Made by a program: the position numbers and the translations under genes | NCBI GenBank assembly: GCA_002269645.1 | Contig: NIVC01001885.1 | Coordinates: 1 to 46,200 of the forward strand | Direction of reading: 5' to 3' | DNA: 46,200 nt | Source of the DNA: Macrostomum lignano | Lineage: Eukaryota | The notes under the pieces: model-generated | The model's input: only the letters and a program-made list of their open reading frames with translations | What the model was told of the DNA's origin: nothing | The model's database searches: none | Shown here: positions 9,100-46,200 of the stretch, one piece after another | How the letters are laid out: each line of letters begins with the position of its first letter | Numbering within the stretch: the first letter of the stretch is position 1

Positions 9100-9868
9100 A
9101 ATATAGAATTTTGCAGCCCATTTGGGCTTACGCGCATTTAATTTAATCCAAGATACGTTTGCCAATGTAACAGAGCTTTTGTCTATGGTAGCAAGGCTGG
9201 CGCAGCGGCATTTAATTTGGTCCAAAATTGACCAACAAGCATCCATTTGGTCCAAACACTCGTGAGCCATTGGACAAACTCTTGCCTTCTCTCAACCGTC
9301 TGCAGGTTGTTGCGCACCGCTGGAATGTCAGCGTCTCTACCAAAAGTTTTCAGTTGCTTTTCCAGAGCTCTGCTGATAGTCGAAATCTGATAACCAACTG
9401 GAGCTGTTCCCTCCCCTCAACTTCTGCTGCATTTCTGCAACGTCAACAAAGGGTTCGTCTCCACTGCATCGAGTAGCAGTTGGACCTGAGGCTCTCGAGC
9501 AACTTTCCTTGGCGATTGCCACCCTTTCGCAGGCAATCTCTGCCGGCAGAGTTTCAACGCGCTGCTGGATGCTGTAAACCACCTTTTCTTTTACATTCAG
9601 CAACCTTGCAATGTCCTTTGGGTGTTCACCTCCGTCGAGTGCTTCGATCACAAGCCAATGACATTCGTTCAATAGCCTAGCATATGGTCCACAATTCTGG
9701 GACTGAGCTGAAAATGAACTAAATGGACCAAATTGATGCTTGTTGGACTAAATTAAATGCCGCTGTGCCAGCCTTTCTACCATAGACAAAAGCTCTGTTA
9801 CATTTACAAACGTATCTTGGATTAAATTCAATGCGCGTAAGCCCAAATGGGCTGCAAAAAGCTATATT
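9100..9868 (-). mobile_element. Non-autonomous Tc1/IS630-like DNA transposon with ~150-bp TIRs and a truncated transposase N-terminus
   Basis: 9100-9254 is the reverse complement of 9724-9868. Across frameshifts the interior reads LVIEALDGGEHPKDIARLLNVKEKVVYSIQQRVE..GGNRQGKL..PQVQLLLDAVETNPLLTL..STISRALEKQLKTF..IPAVRNNLQTVERRQEFVQW (HTH region). No DDE domain is present. Confidence 0.75.
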
Positions 9869-10631
9869 GAAGCTATTGGCAGATCGTAAAGGAGATTTTA
9901 GGTGTAACAATGTACGTGCAGCTGTATGTATTTGTTACTCGCAGACTAATGTAATTATTAATCAAAAACCTGTAAGCAGAGCCTAAAGCAATAGAAGCCA
10001 ATTCTCATTGTTTCCTATCACAGCGCTATAGCTTGCCAGACGGGAGTCAAATCATTGTTCATTTGAACTCTCCCTCTATCTCAAACCCAGCTAAAGTCGG
10101 GGGGTCTCGAGTCTCGACCTTGCGCAGATCAGAAGCCTCCTATGCGAAAGACCTCATTCTCAGCACTGTCAGGACACCCTTTAGATGCCCAAATAGGGTT
10201 GGTGGCAGAACTTCTTTAAGCAGTCCCCTACCTTCAAAACTTCTTGGCCGTAGATGGGATTAGAACAGTGGGAGTCCGGACCTTGCTATCGCACCACAAC
10301 CCAAGCTATCTATGGCGGGTGCCCCTGGGAGGGTGAGGTCTGATCCCCTTCTAACCTGGTATCAGTACCTCGCGCCATAGCTCTGTAAGCTATCGTTCCC
10401 CAGGTTACATCACAATCAAGTGTGATTCTCCTGAGCTGATACCGAAATGCAAAAAAGCATGTCTAATACGCCAGCCCGTACATCCCACTCCAATTCAGAG
10501 CTCACTGTCAGTTTCTTGTTTGCAAAAATCTTTTATTCTGTTGTAATTTTATCATTGAAAGCCTTTTAAAATCATATTAGATAGCTTCGTAAAGCAAAAT
10601 TGCACCAACAAAAATTAGAAACCTTTTCAAT

Positions 10632-10718
10632 TCCGGGATCTCGGGATCTCGGCCCAATTCGTCGGGATCCCGGGATTGGCAAAGTCCGGGATATCCCGAT
10701 CCCGAGAATCCCGGGATC
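10632..10718. repeat. ATCCCGGGAT-motif cluster (MITE-like subterminal remnant)
   Basis: About eight CGGGAT/ATCCCG motifs in 90 bp. Confidence 0.45.
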
Positions 10719-12557
10719 AGATTGAGTTTCATGAAATGAGAATTGAAAATTGAGTTCAGTAGTTGATTTTTGCGCTGTTGCGAGTTGCAAAATTTTTACA
10801 TTAGCTTTTATGGCCACATAAGTGGTTAATGAGTGGCCCATCTTGTGTATATATGACCTTTGATCTATACCTGTTACTGACTGTGCTTTAGACACGTACA
10901 CAGCGTGGAAATGGGCATGGAATTAAAAAAGATTGCAATTATCGTGTGTAACGAAATTGCAATTTTTTTTACAATTTTCTTGCTATATATCGCATTTTAG
11001 CACAATCCACTTATCTGGTGAATACTGGGCGCATATACAACCGAAACGGCGTTTCGTGTCGACTGCTTGTTGACCAACAAACGCCGTCCTCGTTGGTGCG
11101 CCGCGTCGACCTGCTGTTCAATTGAGCCTGTCAACGTCCTGATATCGGAGTTTTAAATTTTGGTCCAGTTTGCAATCACGTTTTTGAAGTTTTTTCATCG
11201 AAAAGTACTAATATTTGGTGGTGTTTAAGGAGAATTTAAGCATAGTATCGGATGAAGCATTTAAAAAATTCTGTCCCAAAAGCAGAATGAATGAAATATG
11301 AATATTTAGCCAGTCTCAACTGTCAGAAAGTTGGGCTGCTTGTGACGAGACATTGACAGCTACTCGGGTGGCTGCTGAGAGTTGCGCATGCACACATTTT
11401 TATCCTGTGCTTTGTAAAAATTTGATTGTCAAATTTCAAACAACCCATCTGAATTTTTTGCCCAACATGCGCTTCAAACAGAATCCTTTGCCAACGAGTA
11501 TGAATGCATTGAGCACGGTGGAATCTTTCATGGCCTGCCTTGTGCAGCGCACTTTGATGCGTTTCTTTGAATTCTCGATTGTCCAGACTACTTCAATGTC
11601 ATTCCAATTTCTATATGAATTAAGTGAGCGCATGTGCACCAAAGTTTTAACTCATCACGCTCTCTGGGTGTTGGAAATTACTGAAACTTGCGTAAAAAGT
11701 CAATAGTTTGAGCATCAGAGTATAGGGCTTACTGACGCTAAAACTCTAATCGATAAGCCGTGTAAATAAAGTTAGCATCACGGACTCCGGAAGCATTTTT
11801 AACAAAGTTATAGTGAGATTTCAATTGTTCCTGTCTCTTTTGTGTATTTTTTCGACTGATTCCTAGATTATAATTACCTAGATATAATTACCTAGATTTA
11901 ACACTCCAGCATTCGCTAATGTATGTAGCGGCCATCTCCCAAGACCCGATAACCCCGCGGTTAGGGCCATAGACACTGGCCGCTGCTAATGCTTGAGAGC
12001 AGCAGAAGCTACAGTCTATGGTCTTAACCCCGGGGTTTTTGCGCTGTGGCTAGGCGGCTGGATTATAGAATCTTTGACCGAAGTCTGTCTACACTAAATA
12101 AGGTTTCACCATAGACAAAGTCGGTCGAAAGCATACTGAATGCACTAGCGATACGACTTAGGAGAATGGTCATTTCTAGGAAAATAGAGTGTATAGGCGT
12201 CCTTCTACTTTTAGTTGCAGATGTGCCGCTCTGCAATGTAACGATATATGAAGATTTTTTCGGCAGCAATTGCTGCCGTGAAAGAATCTGTCTATGTCGT
12301 TATTGTACCCTTTTGCCATGGATGAAGGACGTACCCTTTTGCCCTTCATCCATGCCTTTTGCATGAAATTTGTTTTTGCCGGATTTCTAGTCAATTCTGC
12401 TGTCTATGGCACTTTGAAAGAGCAGTAAAGCTAATAGTCAGTCGTCTATGGTAGTTGGAAAGGACAGTGACGACGACTCGACTATCTGTCATAAATAATT
12501 CCCTAGTGGATTTTTCAGCTTTCAATTAAATTACCAATAGAAAAAGGAGCTACATGT

Positions 12558-14275: not shown

Positions 14276-14755
14276 TCAGCCCAGTCGGACAAAGCTCGCC
14301 CTCTTCTTGGCGTCGTTCAGCTGCTCATCGTCCAGGTAGCTCTCGTCCTCCGGCTCGTAGCTTGGCCGCTTGCCAAGACGGACGAACGAGGCGCGCTTAC
14401 CTAGGCGGACAAATGAGGCGCGCTTCTTCTTGCCGAGGCGGACAAACGAGGCGCGCTTGCCAAGACGGACAAACGAGGCGCGCTTTCCAAGACGGACAAA
14501 CGAGGCGCGCTTCTTCTTGCCGAGGCGGACAAACGAGGCGCGCTTCTTCTTGCCAAGGCGGACAAATGAAGCGCGCTTGCCCAAGCGTACAAACGAGGCG
14601 CGCTTGTCGTTGGCTAGGCCGGCCTCCTCGCCGAGCTCCGCGCAGTAGGACAGACAGTCATCGTCCACCTCGTCCGAGAGGCAGTCGGCTGGCGCGCAGG
14701 CGAAGGCGGCGCTGACCGCCAGCAGCAGGCAGAGTCCAATAAGTTCGGCTCGCAT
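14276..14755 (-). CDS. npp-1: Neuropeptide precursor encoding 9 copies of ASFVRLamide (FVRL/FVRIamide family)
   Basis: Signal peptide MRAELIGLCLLLAVSAAFA. Nine ASFVRLG units are flanked by KR/KKKR cleavage sites with a Gly amide donor, and the last ends G-stop. Synonymous codon variation exists between units. The ATG at 14755 is preferred over the ORF-track start at 14824. The symbol is by recalled similarity to flatworm npp-1. Confidence 0.92.
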   Translation of the reverse strand: MRAELIGLCLLLAVSAAFACAPADCLSDEVDDDCLSYCAELGEEAGLANDKRASFVRLGKRASFVRLGKKKRASFVRLGKKKRASFVRLGKRASFVRLGKRASFVRLGKKKRASFVRLGKRASFVRLGKRPSYEPEDESYLDDEQLNDAKKRASFVRLG

Positions 14756-16727
14756 TCTGCGGTTTAAGGGGTTTTGGAATGATAACAGATGTACAGGATG
14801 AGGCCTTTTCAAGTCTATGGACATAAAAAGGTTGAAATGATATGCTTATAAATTAACGGTTGAGATTGTCTGTGGGGAAAAGTATGGTGGACGAAGGGAG
14901 ACGGCTAACTGAAAAGTAGCGAGGCTGAATTGCAAAACAGAAAGTACAAATATTTGCAGGATTGAAATCCGACAATAGTCTATTTGGCCCGGCCAAGGTT
15001 TGACAGTTGTTAGAAGTAGTTATGCAGCTTCAGTCAATTGTAAATGAAGCTATCAATAATTCTAAAACGCTTGCTTGATGGATGGGAATTTTTTTGGAGA
15101 AAAAAATCTAGGAGTCAGTTTCATCTCAAAGCGAAATTCGAAGTCTAAAGCTCCCGATCTCATGTTATTTACTCAGACAAGAGAGGGCTCGACACTGAGA
15201 TCAATCTTGCCCCATTTTCTAGTCTCTGAATATTTGCTTTCCGGTATTGTTTCGATTAAAGAAACTTTGACTTCCTTTTTGACTGAAGAGTTCGGATAAT
15301 TGGATTTTGAGAAATTTGATAACGCACCGCGGTTGCTGGCCAAGCTATACCCGACTTTCCGACTTTCTCCCCGAGAGACTTTGGCAGAAGTTCTCTGCTA
15401 GATGCGCGCTTTGAACGGAATCAGTTCGGCTCAAAAGTGTCAAACCGAATGCTTGCACCCCAGTCTCACTGAATTCTCGTCACTTCAAAGCCCCAAGGCC
15501 TTTTCTTTACTTTGATGGCGATAATTTCGTTAGTTGCTAAGCCACATTCTTCCAGTTTGCGACACCCACACAAAGCATTTGCATTCAGCTGCTGCGTTAG
15601 CGCCAACAAGAGAGAGAGTTTGCAGACTTGCCAACAAGTATCTGCCAATGGAGATCAGTGCAAACACCTGCTAACTGCTTGCCGGAAAGTGTTTACCACT
15701 GTCAGCAATGCCTGCAATTGTTTAAATTCAAACATGCAATAAATGAAGAGGCCTAAGTACTGAGTTGTTAGCTGGCTCCACTCTAGACAGCAGCAATTGT
15801 CTCACGACAAATACTACGGCTTGTATCTTCGGGTGTTCGTCAAAAATTGCTGCAATGGAATTGCCGAATTTAAACAACTTGCCAACTGCAGCACGCCCAG
15901 CTACTCCAGCCAAGCACTCGGGTTTATCGCTAGTCAAAGGATTTGCCAATATCAGCTCTCGGTCCTCGAGTCTGCAGGACTTCGCAGCGCTCTTGAGTTC
16001 TGATGATGGCGACAGGCTGAAAGTCTCAGCAGCCTCCATCTGCGCCTCTCCTATTCCCGTCCGCTTTCTTGGGAAAGGGCGCTTTAGGAAGTGGAGAGTA
16101 GGATAATGTTTCATGCAAAGCAGGGGGCATGGGAGGGGGGGGGTCAGCGGCGCCCGACTTCGAACCTTTGACTCTCTGCAGCCGCTTTGCCAATAAGCAG
16201 CAAGGCTCCGAGCCGTTCGAGCGTTGACAGTAGGAAAATATCAATTCCTTCTGTTCCGGACAGGCCCATAAAGTCTCCGGCTGGCTGAACTCAATAACAT
16301 TTTTTCTGTGCGCCGCCTTGGACTCGTTCGCGCACACGCGAAAAGATTTATAAGGCTCCTCTCACAGAGCGCCATATGGTTTCAGCTGGCTTTTGCTCCG
16401 AGCTGCCCCCGACTGGTTAATAGCCGCGAAATTGAGACCTACGATATCAATAAACGAAACTTCGCAACGCCAAAAGTGGTTTCGGTGTTCTCCGGCTGTC
16501 GAGCTGGCTGTCGAACTGGCTGAGAAGCCAGTTCCCCTAGCAACTGTTATTTGTGGGGCGTCACAAATTATGGCCGGTTCACAGCATCGATTTCTAGTTG
16601 CAGCCCCAGTTCCTCTTATTAAATCGATTTTGATATGCGGCGTAGCAGCTCGACTCAATATTAATAAATTATTAGGCACAAAAGTTGTGTTTTTTTCATA
16701 GCGGGAAAATTCTACTACAGGAGGAAG

Positions 16728-16770: not shown

Positions 16771-17918
16771 GCATCGCAAAACAGACTTCTGAGCAAACTG
16801 CTGGGCACTGTTTGTACAGGGCTTGGAGATTTTTCTTGTTCTAAAAAATCTACAATCTACAAGTCGGAATAGCGATTGTAAACACTTGAAGTCTTTTTAA
16901 GCGATCTCGTACTCTGCCTCGTCCCGATTCTGCAGTTCCTTAGCCTCCTTCCTGGATGAGAGCATTAAAATTTGCACAGAGCAAGCACTTTATTTGCTTT
17001 ATTGCATAGTTACATGTAGACCTAGCCTTGATGCTCACCCAGCCTCTTTAACGGCTGGATCTGCGAGACAATGCGCCGACAGGGGAGTGGCATGGGTAGC
17101 CCCTCAAGAGTCGCTAGTTAGTCAAGTCGACCAGCCCACCGACTTACATTGAGCTTCATCAATATTGCATCCGTTTGCATTGCTAGAAAGAAAGAAATAG
17201 AAAAATCAAGGCGGGGAACCGGGGGGGGGGGTAGGACCGGAGAATAGGGGATATCGGGGATAAAAAATAACGCCACAATGCTAGAGAACCTTTTGCCGGC
17301 AAATTGTCCTTCAAAATACTTATCTAACCCCATTTGAATGTAATAAAGCCGTTTACAAAAAATTTTATCTAGAAGCAATTTTTTTAAAAGCAAAAAAACT
17401 GCAATACATTAAAACAATTCTGTGACATCAAGTTCAAATTGACTTACCTGTAGTGCTTTCTCTGCCTTTGCGTTAGAAATAAGAGGAATTTCAAAAGCAA
17501 CTTTGGTCTGTTGATTGAAGTCCTATACAAAGCCGAGATTTTTTGGGAGCGGCACCCCTCCGGGCCCCGCGGGTCAGCCGCTTTTATCGGCTCTGGATCG
17601 GCGTCCCAACCCCCCCCCCGCCGTCGCTGCACTCGCCCGGCTCTTGCCAGTTGAAGTCACTCAGTCAGCTATTGGCTGGCTTGAAAGGGAGATTCAACTC
17701 TCCATGGCCCAGGAGGTGCAGCTGCTGTCTCTTAGAGCCAGCTATGGACGAGCAAATCAATCATTGCCGCTCTCAGGGTTAATCCGAGTGCTGAAAATTT
17801 TTTAACTTGCTATTAAAGAAATTTTTAAAGATAAACTTTCTAGATTCAGGGAAACTTGATGGACCAGTCCGTTTGTACTTTTATGGCGAAATTCTCCGTA
17901 TTCTGTACCTAGACTATG

Positions 17919-19066
17919 TATGAGAATGGGTATGAGGATGGGTATAAGAATGGGGATGGGGATGGGTATGAAAATGGGGATGGGTATGAAAATGGGGATG
18001 AGAATGAGCTTGAGAACAGATGAGAATGGAGATAAGAATAGAGATGAGAATGAAAATGAGAATGGGGATGAGAATGAGCTTGAGAACAGATGAGAATGGA
18101 GATAAGAATAGGGATGAGAATGAGGATGAGAATGGGGATGAGAATAGCGATGAAAATGGGCTTGAGAACAGATGAGAATGGAGATAAGAATAGGGATGAG
18201 AATGAAAATGAGAATGGGGATGAGAATGGGGGATGAGAATGAGGGATGAGAATGGGGGATGAGAATGGGGGATGAGAATGGGGGATGAGAATGGGGATGA
18301 GAATGGGGGATGAGAATGGGGGATGAGAATGGGGGATGAGAATGGGGGATGAGAATGGGGGATGAGAATGGGGGATGAGAATGGGGGATGAGAATGGGGG
18401 ATGAGAATGGGGATGAGAATGGGCTTGAGAACAGATGAGAATGGAGATAAGAATAGGGATGAGAATGGGGATGAGAATGGGGATGAGAATGGGGATGAGA
18501 ATGAGCTTGAAAACAGATGAGAATGGATATAAGAATAGGGATGAGAATGAAAATGAGAATGGGGATGAGAATGGGGGATGAGAATGAGGGATGAGAATGG
18601 GGCATGAGAATGGGGGATGAGAATGAGGGATGAGAATGGGGGATGAGAATGGGGATGAGAATGGGGGATGAGAATGGGCATGAGAATGGGGGATGAGAAT
18701 GGGGGATGAGAATGGGGGATGAGAATGGGGGATGAGAATGGGGATGAGAATGGGCTTGAGAACAGATGAGAATGGAGATAAGAATAGGGATGAGAATGGA
18801 GATAAGAATAGGGATGAGAATGGGGATGAGAATGGGGATGAGAATGGGGGATGAGAATGAGGGATGAGAATGGGGGATGAGAATGGGGATGAGAATGGGG
18901 GATGAGAATGGGGATGAGAATGGGGGATGAGAATGGGGGATGAGAATGGGGGATGAGAATGGGGGATGAGAATGGGGATGAGAATGGGGGATGAGAATGG
19001 GGGATGAGAATGGGGGATGAGAATGGGGGATGAGAATGGGGATGAGAATGGGCATGAGAATGGGAT
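17919..19066. repeat. 12-13-bp GATGAGAATGGG(G) satellite with an interspersed longer subunit
   Basis: Tandem units plus about six copies of GCTTGAGAACAGATGAGAATGGAGATAAGAATAG. The ORFs here are repeat artefacts. Confidence 0.95.
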
Positions 19067-19611
19067 AAAGACGAGTATCAAGTGGAGACGGTAGTTGAGA
19101 GTAGCAGTAGATGCATTACACCATCTCTCGCAGCTTTACTAAACTCTTGAGCCTATTTTTGTGCTGAAGGAAATTATTGAGCATCAAATTCTGTTGCTAG
19201 GGGATATTTCTTTCCAATAAAATATGCGCAGATTCGGTGCCCGGTAGGCCTGATTAGAATTGAGCATCTCTCTGTCTGCCAGTGAATGGCGCCAGTCCGT
19301 CTTAGGCAATCTGCCGGTCTTGAGTGATATTCCATGTAGGCACAGCTCCACTCTCCCCCCTCAAGTCTCCGGGCTTCGTCAACCAAGCCAACCAGTCAGT
19401 GCACAAAAAATACTCGTATTTGCCAGCAGAACAGGAGAATCTAATTTTCACTCTAACTCTTTCTATCTGGGGTCTGGAGTGGCTTTGGATGAAACATTGA
19501 TATGGCAACCATGGCAACCATCGGAGGTTTGTTGAGGTGAATTGCTGATCGGTTTTATTTGAGCCTGGATCTGATAGACTTAGTTCAGGTGCCAACCAAT
19601 TCTGTTTTTCT

Positions 19612-25916: not shown

Positions 25917-28900
25917 ATGCTAGGAAATCATTCAAATCGGTTCGCTGATTCCAGTAGCCATGGCAACGCCACGCTGCTCAGCATGCCAACCTGGACAGTC
26001 GTCGGCGCCGTGAAAGCCACCATCATGCTGGCGCTGTTCCTGACTGCCCTGTTTGGCAATGCCGGGGCCGCTTCCGTGCTGCTGCTCATCCGCCGACGGC
26101 TGAACGGCGGCGGCTGGGACGGCGGCGACAGGGCAGGAGGCGGCTGGACTCTGCTGCTGCACCTTCTGGCCGCCGACACACTGGTTGCCATCTTCTGCAT
26201 GCTCGGCGACGCCATGTGGCAGGCCACGGTGCAGTGGCTGGCCGGCGACGCCATGTGCCGACTGTTCAAATTCTGCCAGTCGGCGGCCCTCGCCGCGTCC
26301 ACCTACGTCACCGTAGCGGTGGGCATCGACCGGGCCATAGGCGTCGTTGACGCCGAAACCTCGGATAGTCCGCAGCGCCGCCGGTGCAGACGGAGACTCC
26401 TGACTGCCGCCTGGGGCCTCGCATTACTGGTCAGCTGCCCGCAGGTTCGTGCACCGGGAGACTGGAACTCGGGAAGCCTGTTCGATAATGATGGAGTGCT
26501 GAGGAGACTGGGAGTTGGATAGCCTGTTCGATAATGATGGAGTGCTAAGGAGACTGGGACTTGGATAGCCTGTTCGATAATGATGGAATGCTGAGGAGAC
26601 TGGGACTTGGATAGCCTGTTCGATAATGATGGAGTGCTGAGGAGACTGGGAGTTGGATAGCCTGTTCGATAATGATGGAGTGCTGAGGAGACTGGGACTT
26701 GGATAGCCTGTTCGATAATGATGGAGTGCTGAGGAGACTGGGAGTTGGATAGCCTGTTCGATAATGATGGAGTGCTGAGGAGACTGGGACTTGGATAGCC
26801 TGTTCGATAATGATGGAGTGCTGAGAAGACTGGGAGTTGGATAGCCTGTTCGATAATGATGGAGTGCTGAGGAGACTGGGACTTGGATAGCCTGTTCGAT
26901 AATGATGGAGTGCTGAGGAGACTGGGACTTGGATAGCCTGTTCGATAATGATGGAGTGCTGAGGAGACTGGGAGTTGGATAGCCTGTTCGATAATGATGG
27001 AGTGCTGAGGAGACTGGGACTTGGATAGCCTGTTCGATAATGATGGAGTGCTGAGGAGACTGGGAGTTGGATAGCCTGTTCGATAATGATGGAGTGCTGA
27101 GGAGACTGGGACTTGGATAGCCTGTTCGATGATGATGGAGTGCTGAGGAGGCTGGATGATTAATTTTATCTTTTCGTCAATGATACATTTACTTGTCAGG
27201 GATGAGTACTCGTATCTCAGGAGAAAACAAAAATCCCCATTATGATTCTCCCAAATCTAGCTGCTACAATTTCGCGTCGCCCGCGGGCCCTGGGAGCTGC
27301 CGTTCTACCAGTGCGTCTCACTGCATGTCGACCCGCCAGCCGAGCTCGCTGGCAGCATTGACCGAATCCTGATGGCCGTGATGATCTTCAACCTGACCCT
27401 CATGTTCCTCCTGCCTGTGACGGTCCTCTCGTTCGCCTACGGCCGCCTCGTGCGCGCCATCGACGAGGGGCGTCGCGTGATCGGTAAATTGAATCACCAA
27501 TTCAGTCACCAATTCAGCCACCAATTCAGTCACCAATTCAGTCACCTATTCATTCACCAATTCAGTCACCAATTCAGCCACCAATTCAGTCACCAATTCA
27601 GTCACCAATTCAGTCACCAATTCAGTAAATAATTCAGTCACAAATTCAAACACCTATTCAGTAAATAATTCAGTCACAAATTCAGCCACCAGTTCAGTCA
27701 CCAATTCAGTCACCAATTCAGTCACCAGTTCAGTCACCAATTCAGTCACCAATTCAGTCACCAATTCAGCCACCAATTCAGCCACCAATTCAGTCACCAA
27801 TTCAGTCACCAATTCAGTCACCAATTCAGTCACCAGCTCAGTCACCAATTCAGCCACCAATTCAGTCACCAATTCAGTAAATAATTCAGTCACAAATTCA
27901 AACACCTATTCAGTAAATAATTCAGTCACCAATTCAGCCACCAATTCAGCCACCAATTCAGTCACCAATTCAGTCACCAATTCAGTCACCAGCTCAGTCA
28001 CCAATTCAGTCACCAATTCAGTAAATAATTCAGTCACTAATTCAATCACCAGTTCAGTCACCAATTCAGCCACCAATTCAGTCACCAATTCAGCCACCAA
28101 TTCAGTCACCAATTCAGTCACCAATTCAGTCATCAATTCAGCCACCAATTCAGTCACAAATTCAGTCACCAATTCAGTCACCAGTTCAATCACCAGTTCA
28201 GTCACCAATTCAGTCACCAATTCAGTCACCAATTCAGTCACCAATTCAGTCACCAGTTCAGCCACCAATTCAGTCACCAATTCAGTAAATAATTCAGTCA
28301 CTAATTCAATCACCATTCAGTCACCAATTCAGTCACCAATTCAGTCACCAATTCAGCCACCAATTCAGTCACCAATTCAGTCACCAATTCAGTCACAATT
28401 CAGTAAATTTCAGTCACAATTCAGTCACCAATTCAGTCACCAGTTCAGCACCAATTCAGTCACAATTCAGTCACCAATTCAGTCACCAATTCAGTCACCA
28501 ATTCAGTCACCAGTTCAGCCACCAATTCAGTCACCAATTCAGTCACCAATTCAGTCACCAATTCAGTAAATAATTCAGTCACCAATTCAGTCACCAATTC
28601 AGTCACCAATTCAGCCACCAATTCAGTCACCAATTCAGTCACCAATTCAGTCACCAATTCAGCCACCAATTCAGTCACCAATTCAGTCACCAATTCAGTC
28701 ACCAATTCAGCCACCAATTCAGTCACCAATTCAGTCACCAATTCAGTCACCAGTTCAATCACCAGTTCAGTCACCAATTCAGTCACAAATTCAGTCACCA
28801 ATTCAGTAAATAATTCAGTCACTAATTCAATCACCCATTCAGTCACCAATTCAGTCACCAGTTCAGTCACCAATTCAGTCACCAATTCAGTCACCAATTC

Positions 28901-31181
28901 AGTCACCAATTCAGTCACCAATTCAGTCACCAATTCAGTCACCAATTCAGTAAATAATTCAGTCACCAATTCAGTCACCAGTTCAGCCACCAATTCAGCC
29001 ACCAATTCAGCCACAAATTCAGCCACCAATTCAGTCACCAATTCAGTCACCAATTCAGTCACCAGTTCAACCACCAATTCAGTCACCAATTCAGTCACCA
29101 ATTCAGTCACCAATTCAGTAAATAATTCAGTCACCAATTCAGTCACCAATTCAGTCACCAGTTCAGCCACCAATTCAGTCACCAATTCAGTCACCAGTTC
29201 AGTCACCAATTCAGCCACCAATTCAGTCACCAATTCAGTCACCAATTCAGTCACCAATTCAGCCACCAATTCAGTCACCAATTCAGTCACCAATTCAGTC
29301 ACCAATTCAGTCACCAATTCAGTCACCAATTCAGTCACCAATTCAGTAAATAATTCAGTCACAAATTCAATCACCTATTGAGTCACCAATTCAGTCACCA
29401 GTTCAGCCACCAATTCAGCCACCAATTCAGTCACCAATTCAGTCACCAATTCAGCCACCAATTCAGCCACAAATTCAGCCACCAATTCAGTCACCAATTC
29501 AGTCACCAATTCAGTCACCAATTCAGTCACCAATTCAGTCACCAATTCAGTCACCAATTCAGTCACCAATTCAGTCACCAGTTCAGTCACCAATTCAGTC
29601 ACCAATTCAGTCACCTATTCAGTCACCAATTCAGTAAATAATTCAGTCACCAATTCAGTCACCAATTCAGCCACCAATTCAGTCACCTATTCAGTCACCA
29701 ATTCAGTCACAATTCAGTCATCAGTTCAGTCACCAGTTCAGTCACCAATTCAGTCACCAATTCAGTCACCAATTCAGTCACCAATTCAGTCACCAGTTCA
29801 GTCACCAATTCAGTCACCAATTCAGTCACCTATTCAGCCACCAATTCAGCCACCAATTCAGTCACCAGTTCAGTCACCAATTCAGTCACCAATTCAGTCA
29901 CCTATTCAGTCACCAATTCAGTAAATAATTCAGTCACCAATTCAGTCACCAATTGAGTCACCAAATCAGTAAATAATTCAGTCACTAATTCAATCACCAG
30001 CTTAGTCACCAATTCAGCCTCCAGTTTAGTCACCCATTCAGTCACCAAATCAGTCACCTGAATGTTTATCAATGTTTCCATCGCGGACGGCAAATCCAAC
30101 GAAAACTCGTGTTATGGTTGATTAAATTGAATAAATTGATTAAACTGATCCAATTAAGTTGATTCGTTATCATTTTTTAATCACGCATGCATGAAGCGAC
30201 AAATTTACTCTAATTAGACAAATTAAAGCTGAAGGATCTGTATTGCCTTAAAAGGTAGTGCCTTCCTTAAACAGTATTGAAAACATTGGGTAAAAGAGTT
30301 ATACAGCTGTATCTTGTTCCAGACCGTCCGCCCCATCACACTTCCCCATCCGCCCACTCCCCCCTCTATCTGCTCCCTGTATTTATCTTCTTCCTATACT
30401 CTTCTGCCTCCATTTAACGGTGTGCATGCTCGTCTCCAACGCCCCACTTTGTACTTCACCGTCCGCCATCATCATCCCTACAACCGCCCCTTCACTAACA
30501 CTCTCTCCGCTCCCTCTCTCCGCTCCCTCTCTCCGCTCCCTCTATCCGCCCCTCTCTCCCGCCCCCTCTACCTGGCTCCGCCCCTATCCGCCCCCTTTAT
30601 CCGCCCCCGCCCCCGCCCCTATCCGCCCACTTTATCCGCCCCCTCTCTCCACCCTCTCTATCCGCCCCCGCTCCTATCCGCCCCCTTTATCCGCTCCGGC
30701 TCCTATCCGCCCCCTTTATCCGCCCCGCCCCTATCCGCCCTCTGCTTTATTCGCAGCCGAGCGGCAAGCTTTGGACAGCGATCGCGAAAGCGGCAGCGTC
30801 GGCGGACTGATGAGGCGTGCCAGAGTGCGGAGCCTGCGGATGTTCGCCGCGATCATCTTGACCTTCATTGTCCTGTGGACACCCTACTGGCTGATCTACC
30901 TCGCCACCTGCGTGAGCAACCTGGTCACCGGTGTTCTAGATCAGACTTCGGACCAGAATTATCACTCCAGACTCGAACTGGCTAGCGATTTAATCTTCTG
31001 CTTCGGCATGAGCGTTAGCTCTGTGAATCCCTTTATCTATGCCTTCTGGGGTGGAGGCAGAGGCGGCGGCGGAGGTGGCGGCGGAGGCGGCGTCGGAGGT
31101 GGCGGCGGAGGCGGCAGCGGAGGCGACGGCGGAGGCCGGAATCATCAGCAAATTCCGCAAATTCCAATGCTAATCATCTAA
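25917..31181 (+). CDS. Rhodopsin-class peptide GPCR of the GnRH/corazonin/AKH receptor family; exons 25917-26444, 27261-27483, 30757-31181 (391 aa)
   Basis: TM1 GN, TM2 HLLAAD, ECL1 WQATVQWLAGDAMCR, DR(A), TM4 W..S.PQ, ECL2 FRVARGPWELPFYQCV, TM5 FLLP, ARVRSLRM, TM6 WTPY, TM7 NPFIY. GT/AG introns have matching phases 0 and 1, and there are no frameshifts. Confidence 0.92.
26476..27150. repeat. 46-bp minisatellite in GPCR intron 1 (~15 copies)
   Basis: Unit GGATAGCCTGTTCGATAATGATGGAGTGCTGAGGAGACTGGGACTT. Confidence 0.95.
27495..30058. repeat. 12-bp satellite CACCAATTCAGT in GPCR intron 2 (~210 copies)
   Basis: Direct reading. The ELVT/HQFS ORFs are artefacts. Confidence 0.96.
30500..30740. 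repeat. C-rich CTATCCGCCC low-complexity repeat before GPCR exon 3
   Basis: Repeated CTATCCGCCC/CTCTCCGC motifs. Confidence 0.8.
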
Positions 31182-32848: not shown

Positions 32849-35800
32849 CTACACAAATGCTTTCGCTTCGCTTCCGCCTGCGACTCCAGCAGCTGTCGAT
32901 GCCGCAACGCTCGCACCGGAAGCTGTGGCGGCACTTCCGGCCAGTTCGCCGGCTGTGAGCAGGCTGACTGAGAACTTCTTGCCGCTGTTGGCGTTGCCGC
33001 CTCCGCCGCCGCCGCCGGTAGAAGCTGCTGCTCCAGCTATGCCGGATTCGGCGACGTCTTTGAAGTCGGACCGGATGATGTAGAGCAGGAAGCCGAGAAA
33101 CTGGAACACATCGGCCACCACAGCTAGCCAATAGGACCAGCGCAGCTCGTTTCTGTGCAAAGCGTTCTGCTCGCCATGCTTGATAAAATCGCCCCACACA
33201 GCCACGGCTACCAGTAGGCAGAGAACTGCAAGTTTATAATGCAATAATTGCAAGTAATATTTGTATGATGCAATAATCGTGCGTCCCATTCGAAGCTCGG
33301 AGAAGCTCATCACAGCAGGACACTAACCGAGACCAACTCTGCTTAATTTGCACAAGTGGCTGCGAGTTTGCTAAGATCTATCGACCCCTTGCCTAATATA
33401 GTTAACTCAATCCCTTCCAGCCAATAAGAATGGAGCAAAGGATTGGGGAAGCGGGATAGGCGTGAGGTGGGTAACAGTCGCAGCCAATCAAAACTCGTCA
33501 CTGCTAAATCGATACTCACGAAGCATTCGTGATGTACACACTTACAGGAAGCAAGCAGACTGCTGACAAATAGCAATCTCAGAGTCTTGCTGTGCATCGA
33601 GGCCTCGAATTTCATGCGAACAATGCCGATCGCTAGGGAGGCTACGGACGCCACCAGGCCTAGAATGAATGCCGCCCTGGTCTTAATGAAGTCCGCTGCA
33701 ATAGAGACAAGTTTTACACAGATTAGATCTGCTTAACAACAGCTGGCACCCCCCTGAACCCACAGCAATGCCATTCTATTTGATTCGAGACCATTTTATT
33801 TGATTAAGTGCCATTTTATTTGATTGGATGCCATTTTATTTGATTAGACGCCATTTTATTTGATTAGACGCCATTTTATTTGATTAGACGCCATATTATT
33901 TGATTAGACGTCCATTTTATTTGATTAGACGCCATTTTATTTGATTAGACGCCATTTTATTTGATTAGACGCCATTTTATTTGATTAAGTGCCATTTTAT
34001 TTGATTAGACGCCATATTATTTGATTAGACGCCATATTATTTGATTAGACGTCCATTTTGTTTGATTAGACTCCATTTTATTCTATTGGAGGCCATTTTA
34101 TTTTATTGAAGGCTATTTTATTTGACTAGACGCCATATTTTTTATTAGACGCCATTTTATTTTTTGGAGGCCATTTTATTTGAATCAACGCCATATTTTT
34201 TATTAGACGCCATTTTATTTGATTAGACGCCATTTTATTTTATTGGAGGCCATTTTATTTGTTTAGACGCCATTTTATTTTATTGGAGGCCATTTTATTT
34301 CACTAGACGCCATATTATTTGAATAGACGCCATTTTATTAGACTAGACGCCATATTATTTGACTAGACGCCATATTATTTGATTAGATGCCATTTTATTT
34401 GATTAGATGCCATTTTATTTGATTAGATGCCATTTTATTTTATTGGAGGCCATTTTATTTGATAAGGAGGACATCAAGACACCAAAATGTTGGGCGATCA
34501 AGATCAAGATTTGTACGCGAGTTAATGTGTAGCTTAGTGGGTAATTTTCACGCATACGAGGTATGGATTAACTCTGACAGTTCTCAGTTTCTCGGATAAC
34601 TATTCTATCTTCAGAAGACGAAAGACTGTTACTGAGGATACTAAAAGTACTGAAAATGGTAATGGGAGCAGTAATCCTTCAATTGGAATGGGACAAGCTC
34701 ATACTTCGTATAAGGCTCGTATAAGAAGCAAAGTGCTTCCGACTTGTGGTTCCGCTCTCCAATCTTTCTCTTTGCTATGCAAATGCGATTAGTTGTCAAT
34801 TATTTCTGCTTTCTCTTGCCTTATTTTTCCCTCGAAGTCTGACCATCACACAGTAAGTACAAAGTCAGAACTAAGCTGACCGATTTATATTTGTCTTGCG
34901 GGACTATTGCAGTTACGGATGCTTACTAAAGTGCAGACCCGATGGAAGGGCGAATAGCGACTGCCGCAGGCTTGTTCGAAGTTGGCAGTTCCTACTGGAG
35001 CCGTTCGCCCCAGTTACTTTTGCCCGCAGCAGCAGCAGACGCTGCACATAGTCAGCCAGAGCTTTCAGTCCATGCGCACCACTTGCCGCATCGGGCCGCG
35101 AAATCTGCCGGCTGAATCGCGTGCGGTTGGATTGGCGGAGTGCTTTTGTTCCCATGGCTCTTTAGTTAGAATGCTTGAAAGATAGCGATCACCCACGGAG
35201 TTAGGGTAAGAGTTAGGGTAAGAGTCAAGGTAATACAAACTGCTGACAGAGCGGAAGCCTTGTCACCTGTCCGTCAGTGCCTCGGCAGAAAATTTCAGCC
35301 TCGATGTCATCCGGCACGCAGAGCACGACGTGTCCTCGACGGTCGAGGACAGCAGGGCGAGATCGTCGGCGTAGCCAAGCACGCTGAGCCGCCTCTCCGG
35401 TCGACCCACGCGTCGCTGCAACAGGAAGCCGTCTGCCTACCTCGAAGTTTGTCTACCTTGGCGGTCTGGTGCCTGACGTGTGTGACATTTGTCCCACGCT
35501 TGACTGGCTGACAATGTATTTTCTTGTTGTTTTTGGAAGGTAAGGATTAGGGTAAGGATTAGGGTAAGGATTAGGGTAAGGATTAGGGTAAGGATTAGGG
35601 TAAGGATTAGGGTAAGGATTGGGGTAAGGATTAGGGTAAGGATTAGGGTAAGGATTAGAGTAAGAGTTAGGGTTGGGGAAAAATTCAGCATTTTCATCCA
35701 CTGCGCAAGTGTCACTTCAGAATAAATTAACCAGGATTTCTGTTCTCCACCAAGTAAAGAGAAAGTATATCCAGACACTCATCTGCCACACACAGCTGCC

Positions 35801-38886: not shown

Positions 38887-39689
38887 GACGACCATCCCTA
38901 AAGGCGCGCACAGTGTATACACTGACTTTCGATGAAAAAAGTCAGGGCTGCTGTGCACCCTGTGTGACTGTGGCACCTGTGTCAGCCGGTTCAGCGCAAT
39001 GGGCATGACTGCTTGCCTCCCCTCCCTGCTGGATGCGGGTCGAACGTCGCCTTGATTCCCCAAAGCCTCTAACCCAAAAAACTGCATGCAGTTCAAATAC
39101 CACCGCTATCAGAGCACACACAAAGCTCGATAACTTTGATAACGCAAACACATCATTTTTGTACCGTTGAACGAGACTTAACTATTCGCAAGTGACAGTA
39201 ACGCGTGGACTGCGACCACTTAAAAAAGTTCTAGTGCTGCTTTTCAGGTTTGAAAGACAATATTATTTTACAATCAGCCTTCAGCCAATCGAGCTGTTTA
39301 CATAGAGAATTCATTTCATGGCTTCACAGCCATCAGCCAGGGACTTCTCATCCATTCGCTCTAACGAAAGCGAGCAGGGAAATTATTTTTGCAGTGGCGC
39401 ATCAGCAATTCAGGTAAGTTATTACCTAGAAGTCCGGCCCTCTCTCTGAAGCGGCGTTCCTGTCTTTCCAATCAATTCGCGGTGACAGTGGAAACAGCCG
39501 GGGCGGGCAGTCTCCGAGGAAAGATAAATTTACTCTGGGCAAGACAAGTGAGGTGGGAGTGGACAGAAACTGGAGTAGCTAAAAGGAGTGCGGCACAACT
39601 GTCTTCTTTTGCTTTTGAGCCATGTAGTTCAGAATCCAATCACTAATTCATCATTTCTTCTTCTCTTCCGTTCTTTTCTGCTTTCTCCA

Positions 39690-41675
39690 GTCAGCTGGAT
39701 GGTGAGGGCTGTGTGTGTCAAACACGATTTCAGCTGGATTGTGAGAGCTGTGTGTGTCAAACACGAGTTCAGCTGGATTGTGAGGGCTGTTTGTGTCAAA
39801 CACGAGTTCAGCTGGATTGTGAGGGCTGTGTGTGTCAAACACTATTTCAGCTGGATTGTGAGGGCTGTTTGTGTCAAACACGATTTCAGCTGGATTGTGA
39901 GAGCTGTGTGTGTGTCAAACACGAGTTCAGCTGGATTGTGAGGGCTGTTTGTGTGTCAAACACGAGTTCAGCTGGATTGTTAGAGCTGTGTGTGTGTCAA
40001 ACGCGAGTTCAGCTGGATTGTGAGAGCTGTGTGTGTCAAACACGATTTCAGCTGGATTGTGAGAGCTGTGTGTGTGTCAAACACGAGTTCAGCTGGATTG
40101 TGAGAGCTGTGTGTGTGTTAAACACGATTTCAGCTGGATTGTGAGGGCTGTTTGTGTCAAACACGAGTTCAGCTGGATTGTGAGAGCTGTGTGTGTGTCA
40201 AACACGAGTTCAGCTGGATTGTGAGGGCTGTTTGTGTCAAACACGAGTTCAGCTGGATTGTGAGAGCTGTGTGTGTGTCAAACACGAGTTCAGCTGGATT
40301 GTGAGAGCTGTGTGTGTGTTAAACACGATTTCAGCTGGATTGTGAGGGCTGTTTGTGTCAAACACGAGTTCAGCTGGATTGTGAGAGCTGTGTGTGTGTC
40401 AAACACGAGTTCAGCTGGATTGTGAGGGCTGTTTGTGTCAAACACGAGTTCAGCTGGATTGTGAGAGCTGTGTGTGTGTCAAACACGAGTTCAGCTGGAT
40501 TGTGAGAGCTGTGTGTGTTAAACACGATTTCAGCTGGATTGTGAGGGCTGTTTGTGTCAAACACGAGTTCAGCTGGATTGTGAGGGCTGTTTGTGTCAAA
40601 CACGAGTTCAGCTGGATTGTGAGGGCTGTTTGTGTCAAACACGAGTTCAGCTGGATTGTGAGGCTGTTGTGTGTCAAACACGAGTTCAGCTGGATTGTGA
40701 GGCTGTGTGTGTCAAACACGAGTTCAGCTGGATTGTGAGGGCTGTTTGTGTCAAACACGAGTTCAGCTGGATTGTGAGGGCTGTGTGTGTGTCAAACACG
40801 AGTTCAGCTGGATTGTGAGAGCTGTTTGTGTGTCAAACACGAGTTCAGCTGGATTGTGAGAGCTGTTTGTGTGTCAAACACGAGTTCAGCTGGATTGTGA
40901 GGGCTGTTTGTGTCAAACACGAGTTCAGCTGGATTGTGAGGCTGTGTTGTGTCAAACACGAGTTCAGCTGGATTGTGAGGGCTGTTTGTGTCAAACACGA
41001 GTTCAGCTGGATTGTGAGGGCTGTTTGTGTCAAACACGAGTTCAGCTGGATTGTGAGGGCTGTTTGTGTCAAACATGAGTTCAGCTGGATTGTGAGGGCT
41101 GTTTGTGTCAAACATGAGTTCAGCTGGATTGTGAGGGCTGTTTGTGTCAAACATGAGTTCAGCTGGATTGTTAGAGCTGTTTGTGTCAAACACGAGTTCA
41201 GCTGGATTGTGAGGGCTGTTTGTGTCAAACACGAGTTCAGCTGGATTGTGAGAGCTGTGTGTGTGTCAAACACGAGTTCAGCTGGATTGTGAGGGCTGTG
41301 TGTGTCAAACACGAGTTCAGCTGGATTGTGAGAGCTCTGTGTGTGTGTCAAACACGAGTTCAGCTGGATTGTGAGAGCTGTGTGTGTGTGTGTGTGTGTC
41401 AAACACGAGTTCAGCTGGATTGTGAGAGCTCTGTGTGTGTGTCAAACACGAGTTCAGCTGGATTGTGAGAGCTGTGTGTGTGTCAAACACGAGTTCAGCT
41501 GGATTGTGAGAGCTGTGTGTGTGTGTCAAACACGAGTTCAGCTGGATTGTGAGAGCTGTGTGTGTGTGTGTGTGTGTGTGTCAAACACGAGTTCAGCTGG
41601 ATTGTGAGAGCTGTGTGTGTGTGTGTGTCAAACACGAGTTCAGCTGGACTGTGAGAGCTGTTTGTGTCAAACCTG
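39690..41675. repeat. ~39-bp minisatellite with an embedded variable (GT)n tract
   Basis: Unit GTGTCAAACACGAGTTCAGCTGGATTGTGAGGGCTGTTT, about 48 copies. Confidence 0.95.
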
Positions 41676-41904: not shown

Positions 41905-42680
41905 TAATCACCTCGGCCATACACAGGCCCTTTGCCACAACACTACGAACTCCCGGACAGTCGCTGACTGCACCCGACAGCTCAACCTCCTGGCCAGTTG
42001 CAATACTGTCAGGCTGAAGTGGATCCCAGGGCACTGGAACGAGTTAGCAGACACCCTCGCCAAGAGGGGCGGCTCTGGCTCCTTGGGCCCTGAGCCCCTG
42101 GTCCCTATCCCTTCTACGGTCATCAATCGTCAGATCGATGACTGGGCTGACTCCCTCCACAGGGACAGATGGGCGGGCACCCAAAACTGCCGGCAATCTC
42201 GTGCCGCGGTTCCGTGCCCCTCTCGCAGGCTCAGAAACGTCCTTCTGAACCAAAATCAGAAGGATATTCGAGCCCTCGTCATGACCTTTGCCGGCCATGG
42301 CTACCTCGCCAAGCACTGCTTCCTCCGAAGCGATCTGGAGAGTGAACTTTGTCCTTTTTGCGAGTACAACAATGAAGATGCTCAGCACTTTGTCACTGCC
42401 CTTTTTTTACCAGCGACCGGCTGCGCTACCTCGGGCCAAACCCGTCCATTGACGAGGTCTGCCAGCCCGCGGACAGCATCCCACACGGCTCATCCAGCGA
42501 CAAGCCGAGCCACTTTCTTCCCTAGGAAAGTTTACACTGCAGGACGGACTGGCGGACCACCCTGCGACCCGGCGTCCACGCCTCTGCCTGTCTGCGGGCC
42601 TTCAGGGGTTTAGCGGAATGGGCGACCCTCGCCTCCCTAGTCTACGGATCACCCTCAGCTGAGTCAAGTAAGTCACCTCA
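41905..42680 (+). mobile_element. 5'-truncated non-LTR retrotransposon with RNase H and C-terminal CCHC (I/Loa/R1 group)
   Basis: AIQALCHNTTNSRTVADCTRQLNLLASCNTVRLKWIPGH..NELADTLAKRG (RNase H), followed by FAGHGYLAKH...CPFC...EDAQHF (Zn knuckle). The 3' end contains CAAGTAAG. Confidence 0.85.
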
Positions 42681-43329: not shown

Positions 43330-43617
43330 ATTGATTACACGGTACACCTGCCCCAACAATCGGCCGCCAGATGTGCAACCGACAGCTCAGCCGCAGCTAT
43401 TGCGCGGCGCATCTGAAGGCTGCGTACGGCTGTTCAGTTCAAAGACTGGCGGACACCCTCAATTACCCCAGCTAATGCTGGCACCCATTTTACACCCTGG
43501 GTGGACTGAAGCAATACAGAGGGACCAAGAAGAGGGACGTCTTGCTGAAGGACCAAGAGTCGAGAGTCGAACCCCAGACCTTACAGTCTGGAGTCCGACG
43601 CTCTAACCCTTAGGCTA
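43330..43617 (-). mobile_element. tRNA-derived SINE with CORE-like central domain
   Basis: Minus strand TAGCCTAAGGGTTAGAGCG (A box), GGTTCGACT (B box), then GGTCCTTCAGCAAGAC and CCACCCAGGGTGTAAAATGGGTGCCAGC. AT-rich tail. Confidence 0.7.
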
Positions 43618-44335
43618 CAATTCCCTCAACAAGTTTTGAACGAAATATCGCCAAATAGCTAGAATTTCAAAACTTTCTACTCACTATCATTCTTAGTAAC
43701 AGTAGTAATATCAGAGTTTGCGAAAAATAAGATCAGAGTTATGGTTAAAAATTAAAAACGTTTGTGCATATGAATGTCAGTAAATATTTGTTTTAATGGT
43801 TACAATTACAATTAATGGGTCGGGACTGACTCTGGTACATTTCCCGTAGAAATCCAATTTTATGAGCGTAATTACTCGTAGTGTATCTTGGCAAAAAACT
43901 TTATATTCTTCATTTAAAATATAGAAAAAAGTCAACTTGAGTGCAGATTTGCATAATTAATTAAGCTGGTGATGACTGTGTTTATTTCGAGTCCATATCT
44001 GGAGGTGGGGAGCAGTTTTTTATTAACTACATTTTGATAGCAAATGGGAGTTAGAAAGAATTATAATAGCACACATTGTACAAGTCAAGCAAATTCTAAT
44101 TATCAAATACTAGCGATAAAGGGACTTTCGGACTTGAACATGTCAGTCTCCCCTTAGTCATTTCACTATATAATAAAATAGAAAAAAACAACAGCAGGTA
44201 CAACAGTGAGTGAATTAAGGAAAGGTATTTCAATTAGAGCTTGAACTGGAAGTGAATGGTAGGCATATACCAGGGTAGCAATATGAATGCGGCTTGCTCT
44301 CATTCAATTAGTCGGCAAGGCCTAATTTAAACAAA

Positions 44336-44888
44336 TCAAGCCGGCTGCGATTCAGCGCCAGCGCCTCGCGCGCCTCCGGCTCGCTTCCGTTCGCGCCTGC
44401 GCGCTTTCCTCTGCCTGCGCCGGAGTTTGCGCCTCTCCCGGCGCTGACGCTTGCACTCGGGCGTGCTGCACTTGGAACGTCGGCCGGCCTTTCTGCCGCC
44501 CTTCCGGCGGCCTTTCCGGCCTTTGCGGCCTTTACGGCCTTTCCGACCTTTACGGCCCTTCCGGCCCTTCTTCTTCCTTCGGCCGCGGCGCTTCCGGGCG
44601 CCACTGGGGCTGGCGTCAGATCCGGCGCTGGCGCTAAAAATAAAAATAAATGAATGACAATTCAAGGTGATCGAAAATCAATAGAATGGCGCCTATTATT
44701 TTTACGGTCCAGCATTACAGATGGACTTACACTTCAGGCCGCTGATTTCCGGTCTGAAGTGCGCCGCCTGCTTCAGGAGCCAGAAGCTGCAGCGGCTGTC
44801 GGCCAGAGGCTGGAGCCGCCTCACAGACGAGGCTGTAAGCGGCAACGCTGGCCGCAACGACCAGGGCCAGTGTACAAAGGCCCTTCAT
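44336..44888 (-). CDS. Small secreted Arg/Lys-rich (GRK-repeat) protein, 151 aa; exons 44888-44731 and 44633-44336
   Basis: Exon 1 MKGLCTLALVVAASVAAYSLVCEA... is signal-peptide-like. The 97-bp intron GTAAGT...TTTTTATTTTTAG is phase 2 at both ends. Exon 2 encodes (GRK)6 with varied codons, CSTPEC and a poly-Arg helix. Confidence 0.8.
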
Positions 44889-46200
44889 GTGCGCGCGTCT
44901 TTGACTTTTTAAAAAAGTAAATGTGTATTATAATCTTTTGCTACGAATAGCTGTCCGGTTCGACTCTTGAACGGTAGCAATTTAGTTTTCTGAATGCTGT
45001 TGTGGGCTTTGACTTCTGTTGTGGCCTTAAATATGAAACTTCATAGAGCGAAGGGACGGGGAGGGAGGGTTGACGGAGACGAAAGGAAAGGGAAGGGAAG
45101 GGAAGGCCTTGGGTTTGGCGGCAGCGAGACTGAGGACCCATGCAAAGGGGAGAGTGTGGAATCGGGGGGCTCAAGAGAAGATGGAGGCTTAGGAGCCAAT
45201 GTGCAAACGAAAGAAGGATGAATCGAAGGAATTTAGCCCATGCAGGGTTGGGTAATGTGATGACTAGGCGCCGCGTCCAGCCAGCCCCTCCTCCCCAAGT
45301 CCACACAAGACCCAAACCCTCGCTTTGAAGGCAAGAGGTTTTGCAGTTTCTGCGTTTGCTGTACTCTGAGTAACTGAACATTTAGTTAGTAACCTTGTAC
45401 GCCTCGTCACGTGCGACCGATGCGGACCGCTGGGCCCGCGTCGACTTCGTCGCTCTTGATGTCGCCCGATCTATCCGCACAACCTTTCCTCTGCTCTCTC
45501 CCTCCTTCCATCTACATGTTATTGGGCGAGCGTGTGTTCTTGCATGAAGCTGGGCACATTAGCACTTTTCACCCATCTGGCTGCAGTTAACTTATAGAGT
45601 TCCCTACAGAAAGCGAACTCGATACCTCCTATAAGTCGTGAGACCTATACATGTAACTACTGTATAGCGTGTTGCTGGTCTGGTTGTTGCTAATCAGACC
45701 TATGCTCGTCGTACTATGCGGTCTGCACGAGCGATACGTCTACTACATATATTAGCCAATGCACCTTCCTTTGGTGTACGGCAGATGAACTAGACATACC
45801 GATAGAAGAAAAACGATCGAGCCTTTCAATCCGCCATTGAACACAGCATGATATGCGACGCATCGATAGAGTTCGTCAAGAGACATTGATTTATCAATAC
45901 AGATGCTCATGGCTCAAGTGCGATGATATCAAACTATTATGCTGTGTCGCTGAGACAGTACATGTACATGTACGAGCGTATCTTGATCTTGTTATGTACC
46001 AGAAAGAATTGAGGGGGACAATTCTTATATTTAATTATATATTAAACTTCTAAAAAATTGGCAAATTTATATCATGCATTTTAAATAAAAAGTCTATAAA
46101 AACGTGACAAAGGGGTGTGGTAAATAATTTTGGCACCAGCTGATGGACCATCCCCCGTCCCGCCCGGATCCGGGAATGTAGAAATTTAGTATTACTAACA

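Follow-up and report, generated by a model that had tools for sequence, protein, structure and literature searches.

What does the minus strand encode near the end of this Macrostomum lignano contig, and what would so highly charged a protein do once it left the cell? The window, that is, the whole stretch of DNA analysed here, comprises 46,200 nucleotides (contig NIVC01001885.1, positions 1 to 46,200), and the candidate occupies less than 600 of them. We favor the reading, to which we assign a probability of roughly 0.4, that a previously unannotated, taxon-restricted two-exon M. lignano gene encodes a small secretory GRK-repeat polycation that associates with polyanionic glycans as part of a gland secretion. 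That the candidate is a real, expressed gene is predicted from sequence, and this part of the reading we consider likely. What is new is the small, stand-alone, unannotated candidate itself; secreted flatworm GRK repeats have already been described.

Joining the two exons (Table 1) keeps the reading frame and gives, by direct reading, a coding sequence of 456 nt and a product of 151 amino acids, MKGLCTLALVVAASVAAYSLVCEAAPASGRQPLQLLAPEAGGALQTGNQRPEVASAGSDASPSGARKRRGRRKKKGRKGRKGRKGRKGRKGRKGRRKGGRKAGRRSKCSTPECKRQRRERRKLRRRQRKARRRERKRAGGARGAGAESQPA. Both the coordinates and the sequence are exactly those that the earlier note had derived from the DNA. A composition scan places the candidate intron at about 33-34% G+C and the flanking exons at 66-74%, and the donor and the acceptor coincide exactly with the drop and the rise in G+C. 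In size, the intron is close to the 100-nt GTGAGA...CAG intron (1272-1371) of the neighboring P450 gene. Past the stop codon the DNA is AT-rich.

Table 1. Features of the candidate gene and of its predicted product, in window coordinates
Feature	Position	Strand	Residues	Description	Basis
ATG start	44888	(-)	1		sequence reading
Exon 1	44888..44731	(-)	Met1 to first two bases of codon 53	158 nt; signal-like peptide and start of linker	sequence reading
Intron	44730..44634	(-)		97 nt, phase 2, GTAAGT...TTTATTTTTATTTTTAG	sequence reading
Exon 2	44633..44336	(-)		298 nt including TGA at 44338-44336; remaining linker, polybasic domain and tail	sequence reading
TATA-like heptamer	44926..44932	(-)		TATAATA, 44 nt upstream of ATG; candidate promoter element	prediction
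In-frame TAA	44930-44928	(-)		42 nt upstream of ATG; closes the frame	sequence reading
Pyrimidine/AG tract	44905..44916	(-)		TTTTTTAAAAAG, 17 nt before ATG; possible (trans-)splice acceptor	prediction
Two AATAAA hexamers	43981..44024	(-)		314 and 352 nt past the stop codon; candidate polyadenylation signals	prediction
Signal-like segment	44888-44817	(-)	1-24	one Lys, then uncharged hydrophobic core; Cys and Ala at -3/-1	exon 1
Linker			25-65	net charge -1	
Basic domain			66-151	48 R/K, 4 D/E, net +44, one large hydrophobic residue	
Polybasic tract	44477..44596	(-)	66-105	RKRRGRRKKK(GRK)6GRRKGGRKAGRR	sequence reading
Six exact GRK units	44566-44513	(-)	76-93		sequence reading
CSTPEC	44453..44470	(-)	108-113		sequence reading
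Arg-rich helix	44366..44461	(-)	111-142	PECKRQRRERRKLRRRQRKARRRERKRAGGAR; pLDDT 89-97	AF2 single-sequence model

The predicted protein begins with MKG, followed by a hydrophobic stretch at residues 4-21, with an uncharged core of 14 residues, and by CEA/AP, with small residues at -3 and -1 before residue 25. The signal peptide proposed earlier is thus recovered as a signal-like N-terminus within exon 1, a call defined by a heuristic rule for core and cleavage pattern together with a helix at residues 3-21 in a single-sequence AF2 model. The same model breaks at residues 23-25, has low confidence throughout the middle of the protein, which is probably disordered, and regains confidence in the Arg-rich helix, a feature that the earlier note had also named. 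(GRK)6 and CSTPEC lie where they had been placed, the former embedded in RKRRGRRKKK...GRRKGGRKAGRR. Once the signal is removed, the cysteines of CSTPEC are the sole two remaining, and they may form either a 6-residue loop or intermolecular bonds, should the predicted disulfide be made. Two statements about charge needed correction. The note had counted about 48 Arg and Lys in some 80 residues; the number of basic residues is right, but the span that begins at RKRR (residue 66) is 86 residues long. It had also described a neutral pro-region that ends in a furin-type site. The linker is indeed neutral, yet RKRR does not stand out as a specific site for furin that would delimit such a region, as motifs of the form RX[KR]R occur four times where shuffling of residues 66-151 predicts 5.8, and two of the four fall within the predicted helix. 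The linker also yields a usable tryptic peptide, QPLQLLAPEAGGALQTGNQRPEVASAGSDASPSGAR.

We find no record of this protein. The collection searched holds about 15 billion proteins, including the NCBI and UniProt M. lignano proteomes, and the candidate is absent from both of these. Neither a word-indexed search of the collection nor an exhaustive HMMER search of 1.84 billion representatives returned a homologue of the spliced protein; the only three matches (38-44 bits) are compositional, and composition-corrected BLASTP against them finds nothing. With database size kept equal, a phmmer control gives E = 1e-79 for an identical protein, below 1e-26 for copies with 50% random substitutions and below 1e-23 for the single-exon ORFs. 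The candidate is therefore unannotated, as the earlier note had stated, and without a detectable homologue, with the qualification that low-complexity filtering could hide a match to Mlig-ap1 (MH586844) or to ap3 in such database searches. Given that assembled M. lignano RNA-seq is apparently not part of the collection (the P450 cluster has no Logan member), absence from the database is uninformative about transcription. Pfam gives no match to the spliced protein even at E = 10, and a sequence search of the PDB gives chance matches only, to a WRKY domain and a collagen peptide. Exact-sequence look-ups of the exon 1 ORF, of the exon 2 ORF and of an upstream 146-aa ORF are not on record, and the same holds for two UniProt paralogues of the neighboring membrane protein. 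No gene is called less than 10 kb from the candidate, and Rfam and tRNA scans of the window are empty. A literature search for the string GRKGRKGRK found no paper, and neither GRK strings nor the candidate N-terminus matched in the literature supplements searched, those of PMC5977470 among them. The poor assembly of GRK regions from short reads could perhaps explain the gap in annotation.

Around the candidate, the window is a mixture of genes and repeats. A CYP2-like P450 gene (862-2451, plus strand) is 99% identical to M. lignano A0A1I8I3R8, and GenBank contig NIVC01000984.1 is 98.6-99.1% identical to window positions 1-12221. From synteny with this contig, the Mlig_3_7 counterpart of the 553-bp candidate gene is predicted at about NIVC01000984.1:160,050-160,610. 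Relative to that contig, P450 exon 1 lacks G, G and CA (929, 949, 1213) and its frame is shifted twice, which reflects either assembly indel errors or a pseudogene haplotype. An LTR-retrotransposon-type gag-pol (4918-8333, plus strand) encodes aspartyl protease, reverse transcriptase and the zinc-binding and core parts of an integrase in several overlapping frames, and no gene is called for it in the NCBI copy. Two plus-strand exons (25917-26522 and 30420-31181) encode a rhodopsin-family GPCR (7tm_1) whose C-terminus enters a poly-Gly tract; its intron of about 4 kb is filled by a 12-bp minisatellite (27906-29374) that reads (TELV)n on the minus strand and has a strong GC skew. A three-exon gene for a small membrane protein lies on the minus strand (36914-36774, 33696-33535, 33223-32849), with 57-82% identity per exon to M. 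lignano A0A1I8IQX4 ("DUF202 domain-containing") and A0A1I8GL99; its last exon has a weak PMP22/claudin match, and its own copy is not in the protein collection. On the same strand, a single-exon ORF that resembles a neuropeptide precursor (14276-14824) has the signal-like start MRAELIGLCLLLAVSAAFA and about 10 copies of ASFVRLG flanked by KR or KKKR, from which ASFVRL-amide peptides are predicted. Two versions of this ORF are not on record by exact look-up, and the strings FVRLamide and SFVRLG occur in no paper found.

Repeats account for much of what remains. Minisatellite arrays at 17802-19081, 39588-41607, 35437-35778 and 2846-3442 give rise to spurious long ORFs in many frames, with PILI/PHSH, VCVKHEFSWIVRA, LTLI and other repeats as their products, and at one of these arrays, in the interval 18-19 kb, the GC skew is +0.94. 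About 0.7 kb downstream of the candidate (~43430-43620, minus strand), a head that is tRNA-like by eye (GGGAATTGTAGCCTAAGGGTTAGAGCGTCGGACTCCAGAC...GGTTCGACTC) is followed by a conserved-looking body, which suggests a tRNA-derived SINE; ARAGORN and Rfam reported nothing at this position. At 42044-42613, ORFs of 114-176 aa on both strands include a CxxC...H-like motif (HCFLRSDLESELCPFCEYNNEDAQHF), and the region resembles the C-terminal end of ORF2 from a non-LTR retrotransposon; Pfam has no match to it.

A question remains, is the two-exon model more than a chance alignment of open frames? The locus may hold no functional gene at all, being instead a GC-rich 9-bp minisatellite with chance frames, or else a decayed or truncated 5' duplicate of a large GRK gene such as Mlig-ap1. 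We judge this unlikely, if far from negligible, and several observations agree with it. The DNA is a detectable tandem repeat, with seven copies of a 9-bp unit at 44508-44570 (85% matches). Because exon 2 is GC-rich (about 70% G+C) and is open in a second frame as well (a 98-aa ORF, 44308-44604), the length of the ORF says little, and signal-like ATG ORFs, by a crude rule, number 2 in the window against 2.7 expected per window by chance. Homologue and annotation are both missing from two proteomes. Codon usage, with log-odds trained on 965 neighboring codons, is uninformative, at -22.6 for the proposed frame and -20.4 for the next one, and GC3 in exon 1 is low (0.58, against 0.65-0.94 in neighboring genes). 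The complete model is a different matter, being reproduced in one of 150 shuffles that preserve local composition, when a signal-like ORF, a GTRAG donor, a pyrimidine-rich AG acceptor at most 400 nt away and at least 90 further in-frame codons are demanded together; the figure is rough because these criteria were chosen after the candidate had been seen. The repeat itself also behaves as coding sequence. Among the six GRK units there are five differing positions, all of them third-codon positions and all synonymous, whereas the same differences change amino acids in each of the other five frames. Variation that is exclusively synonymous has p = 0.0014 if the five are independent events and p = 0.022 if there were three. 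The codon variants quoted in the earlier note are all present, and its argument from silent change at the level of the protein holds within these limits. Splice sites that fall on composition boundaries likewise speak for a gene, as does an ORF that is intact where the assembly or the locus shows frameshifts in other genes, and the 44 kb downstream are without other GRK-coding segments. The frameshifting indels that separate the nearby P450 gene from its NCBI copy mean that a single-base error within the 456-nt coding sequence is possible. The opposite strand could be read as a PFRPLRP-type, Bac5-like product (PFRPLRPLRPFRP...), a candidate that we rejected: an ATG, a signal and splice sites are all missing on that strand, and the differences between repeat units change amino acids in its frame.

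If the gene is expressed, its product would enter the endoplasmic reticulum co-translationally and lose its signal near residue 24, leaving a mature protein of about 127 residues with a net charge of about +43, mostly disordered save for the Arg-rich helix and the CSTPEC cysteine pair. Because nothing inside the protein neutralizes this charge, there being no charge-balancing acidic pro-piece, a polyanionic partner would be needed, with which the protein would be packaged inside secretory vesicles. Its action would be purely electrostatic, the binding and condensing of polyanions such as the sulfated or carboxylated glycans of glycoproteins or mucus. After release, the flexible GRK tract would bind glycans multivalently, the same action that is proposed for Mlig-ap1, Mile-ap3 and Tmed-ap3, and the rigid Arg-rich helix with the two cysteines could serve as a further site of binding or cross-linking.

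Polycations such as protamine are antibacterial, and a product secreted on the epidermis or the gut surface could kill or agglutinate microbes by charge, like protamine or poly-arginine. A signal peptide on an extremely cationic product would suit such host defence, and orphan status is typical of invertebrate defence peptides. We nevertheless consider this role improbable, and the membrane-active or antimicrobial peptide that the earlier note had listed among its candidates finds little in the sequence to build on: the last 86 residues hold one V/L/I/M/F/W/Y, no amphipathic design is present, and the best 18-residue segment, within the helix, has a mean hydrophobicity of -1.75. Defensin-, cathelicidin- and arminin-type precursors have an anionic pro-piece, and in cationic toxins and defence peptides such a piece masks the charge; here the net charge is -1 in residues 25-65 and +44 in residues 66-151, so that the linker provides no such mask. 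The window contains no paralogue cluster. Polyanion binding fits better than membrane insertion because the linker is non-acidic and so little of the basic domain is hydrophobic. A comparably small chance attaches to a nucleic-acid-binding protein that is transferred or enters cells by way of an Arg-rich RNA-binding or cell-penetrating helix; a component of seminal fluid that acts on the mate would be one example. The confidently modeled helix KRQRRERRKLRRRQRKARRRERKR resembles arginine-rich motifs, a likeness that is compositional. Prostate-limited transcripts of M. lignano are often orphans with a signal peptide (no BLAST match for 31 of 76, signal peptide in 38 of 65; PMC5977470), but nothing links the locus to prostate or testis, and the candidate strings are absent from the supplements of that study.

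The remaining alternative, a prohormone-like precursor, we regard as very improbable. In such a precursor the polybasic run would be a spacer, and processing would release a 40-residue N-terminal peptide and a disulfide-cyclised SKCSTPEC. G-R-K is formally an amidation/cleavage motif, the protein has 28 dibasic pairs, and SKCSTPEC sits between RR and KR. Yet the basic motifs are no commoner than composition predicts, with RX[KR]R at 4 versus 5.8, no conserved peptide or homologue is found, and selection visibly keeps the GRK units themselves. The genuine neuropeptide precursor in the window (14276-14824) looks quite unlike the candidate. A related possibility was tried and rejected, namely a ring-helix peptide of the calcitonin/CGRP type. 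Peptides of this type have a 6-residue disulfide ring in which Thr precedes the second Cys, followed by an amphipathic helix, and they carry an amide signal at the C-terminus; in the candidate, Glu takes the place of that Thr in the ring CSTPEC, the helix consists almost wholly of Arg and Lys, and the end ...AESQPA is without a Gly-basic amidation signal.

For the glycan-binding polycation that we prefer, is a more specific place in the animal conceivable? In M. lignano, heparin stops attachment, and release is stopped by a cationic peptide as well as by lysine or arginine in free form (PMC6410801, PMC8621496); the accepted model is that GRK regions of the Mlig-ap1 type bind negatively charged partners (PMC6410801). 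The candidate could be a native soluble polycation of the duo-gland system, which either condenses the glycosylated glue in the vesicle core or buffers the postulated negatively charged releasing factor and so tunes detachment. We hold this narrower version to be a long shot. If true, a native secreted polycation would supply a regulator that the account of reversible adhesion has so far lacked, given that exogenous cationic peptides already block detachment (PMC6410801). Regardless of this role, expression of the gene would mean that M. lignano has a miniature stand-alone GRK secreted protein beside the giant Mlig-ap1, and that both current M. lignano annotations miss low-complexity secreted genes. 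The 86 basic residues could then be synthesised and would offer a tractable model of GRK-glycan binding and of charge-driven adhesion or vesicle packing, work that the thousands of residues in the known GRK proteins make hard. If the gene is not expressed, the locus is merely a GC-rich coding-like repeat of no consequence.

How does the candidate compare with known secreted or compact polycations? The cement proteins Pc-1, Pc-2, Pc-4 and Pc-5 of the sandcastle worm are, like the candidate, secreted small-to-medium polycations rich in Gly and Lys. They pair with the polyanionic Pc-3, by charge pairing or coacervation in secretory granules. In contrast to the candidate, they belong to another phylum, are rich in Tyr/DOPA and His, and show no homology to it. 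Protamines and other sperm nuclear basic proteins share its charge density and low complexity; protamines are nuclear and without a signal peptide, whereas the candidate has an in-frame signal-like N-terminus in exon 1 and is Gly/Lys-rich as well as Arg-rich. Three marine metatranscriptome proteins, P0001 and P0002 (MERC, ERR1712223, ERR1712088) and P0005 (ENA), are built in a similar order, with a signal-like start, a short spacer and a run of the RRRKGRKGRKGRK or KKGKKGK type. Their spacers are acidic and their C-terminal parts different, the likeness is compositional, and composition-corrected BLASTP finds nothing between them and the candidate. Such examples suggest a repeated origin of secreted proteins with G-[RK]-K repeats.

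The closest likeness is to the GRK adhesive proteins of flatworms. The earlier note had thought protamine-like charge on a secreted protein unusual; in M. lignano and its relatives this is in fact a described class. Its statement that Mlig-ap1 has Lys/Arg-rich regions was correct, and the literature goes further, describing repeats that literally read GRK in adhesive proteins of flatworms (PMC6410801, PMC8621496, PMC6745481, PMC9229212). Mlig-ap1 of M. lignano has 5,407 aa, of which more than 3,600 aa are KR/GRK regions with a pI above 14 (PMC6410801, PMC8621496). In Mile-ap3 of Minona ileanae, "multiple units of the peptide GRK" are present, and after its knock-down the adhesive vesicles have no electron-dense core (PMC6745481). 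In Tmed-ap3 of Theama mediterranea, a signal peptide is followed by a 3,700-aa GRKHS low-complexity region (PMC9229212). GRK regions of this kind are poorly assembled from short-read transcriptomes (PMC6410801, PMC8621496, PMC6745481, PMC9229212). The candidate comes from the same species as Mlig-ap1 and from the same phylum as Mile-ap3 and Tmed-ap3. Like Mlig-ap1, Mile-ap3a/b and Tmed-ap3, it has an N-terminal signal peptide, predicted in its case, and then Gly/Arg/Lys low complexity with literal GRK units, and it shares with them an extreme positive charge, the lack of non-flatworm homologues and poor short-read assembly or annotation.

The differences are chiefly of scale and of domains. 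The candidate has 151 aa, and its basic domain of 86 residues falls about 40-fold short of the length seen in the GRK adhesive proteins known so far; two family features, a signal-like N-terminus and the GRK low-complexity region, are present, and the GRK region of thousands of residues is absent. Mlig-ap1 also has lectin, vWD and EGF domains; in the candidate there are instead a neutral linker of 41 residues, a pair of cysteines and a separate Arg-rich helix. We rejected the possibility that these are the first exons of Mlig-ap1, which is reported on a different scaffold, scaf1170: a stop codon is present, and no further GRK exons follow in the 44 kb downstream. Nor does the candidate form part of a larger GRK gene in the window, given the upstream in-frame TAA, a stop codon followed by AT-rich DNA and no other K/R-rich GRK-type coding segments in the 44 kb downstream or the rest of the window. 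Likened to these proteins by published descriptions, the candidate is filed here not as an ap1/ap3 member, but as a small secreted flatworm GRK polycation.
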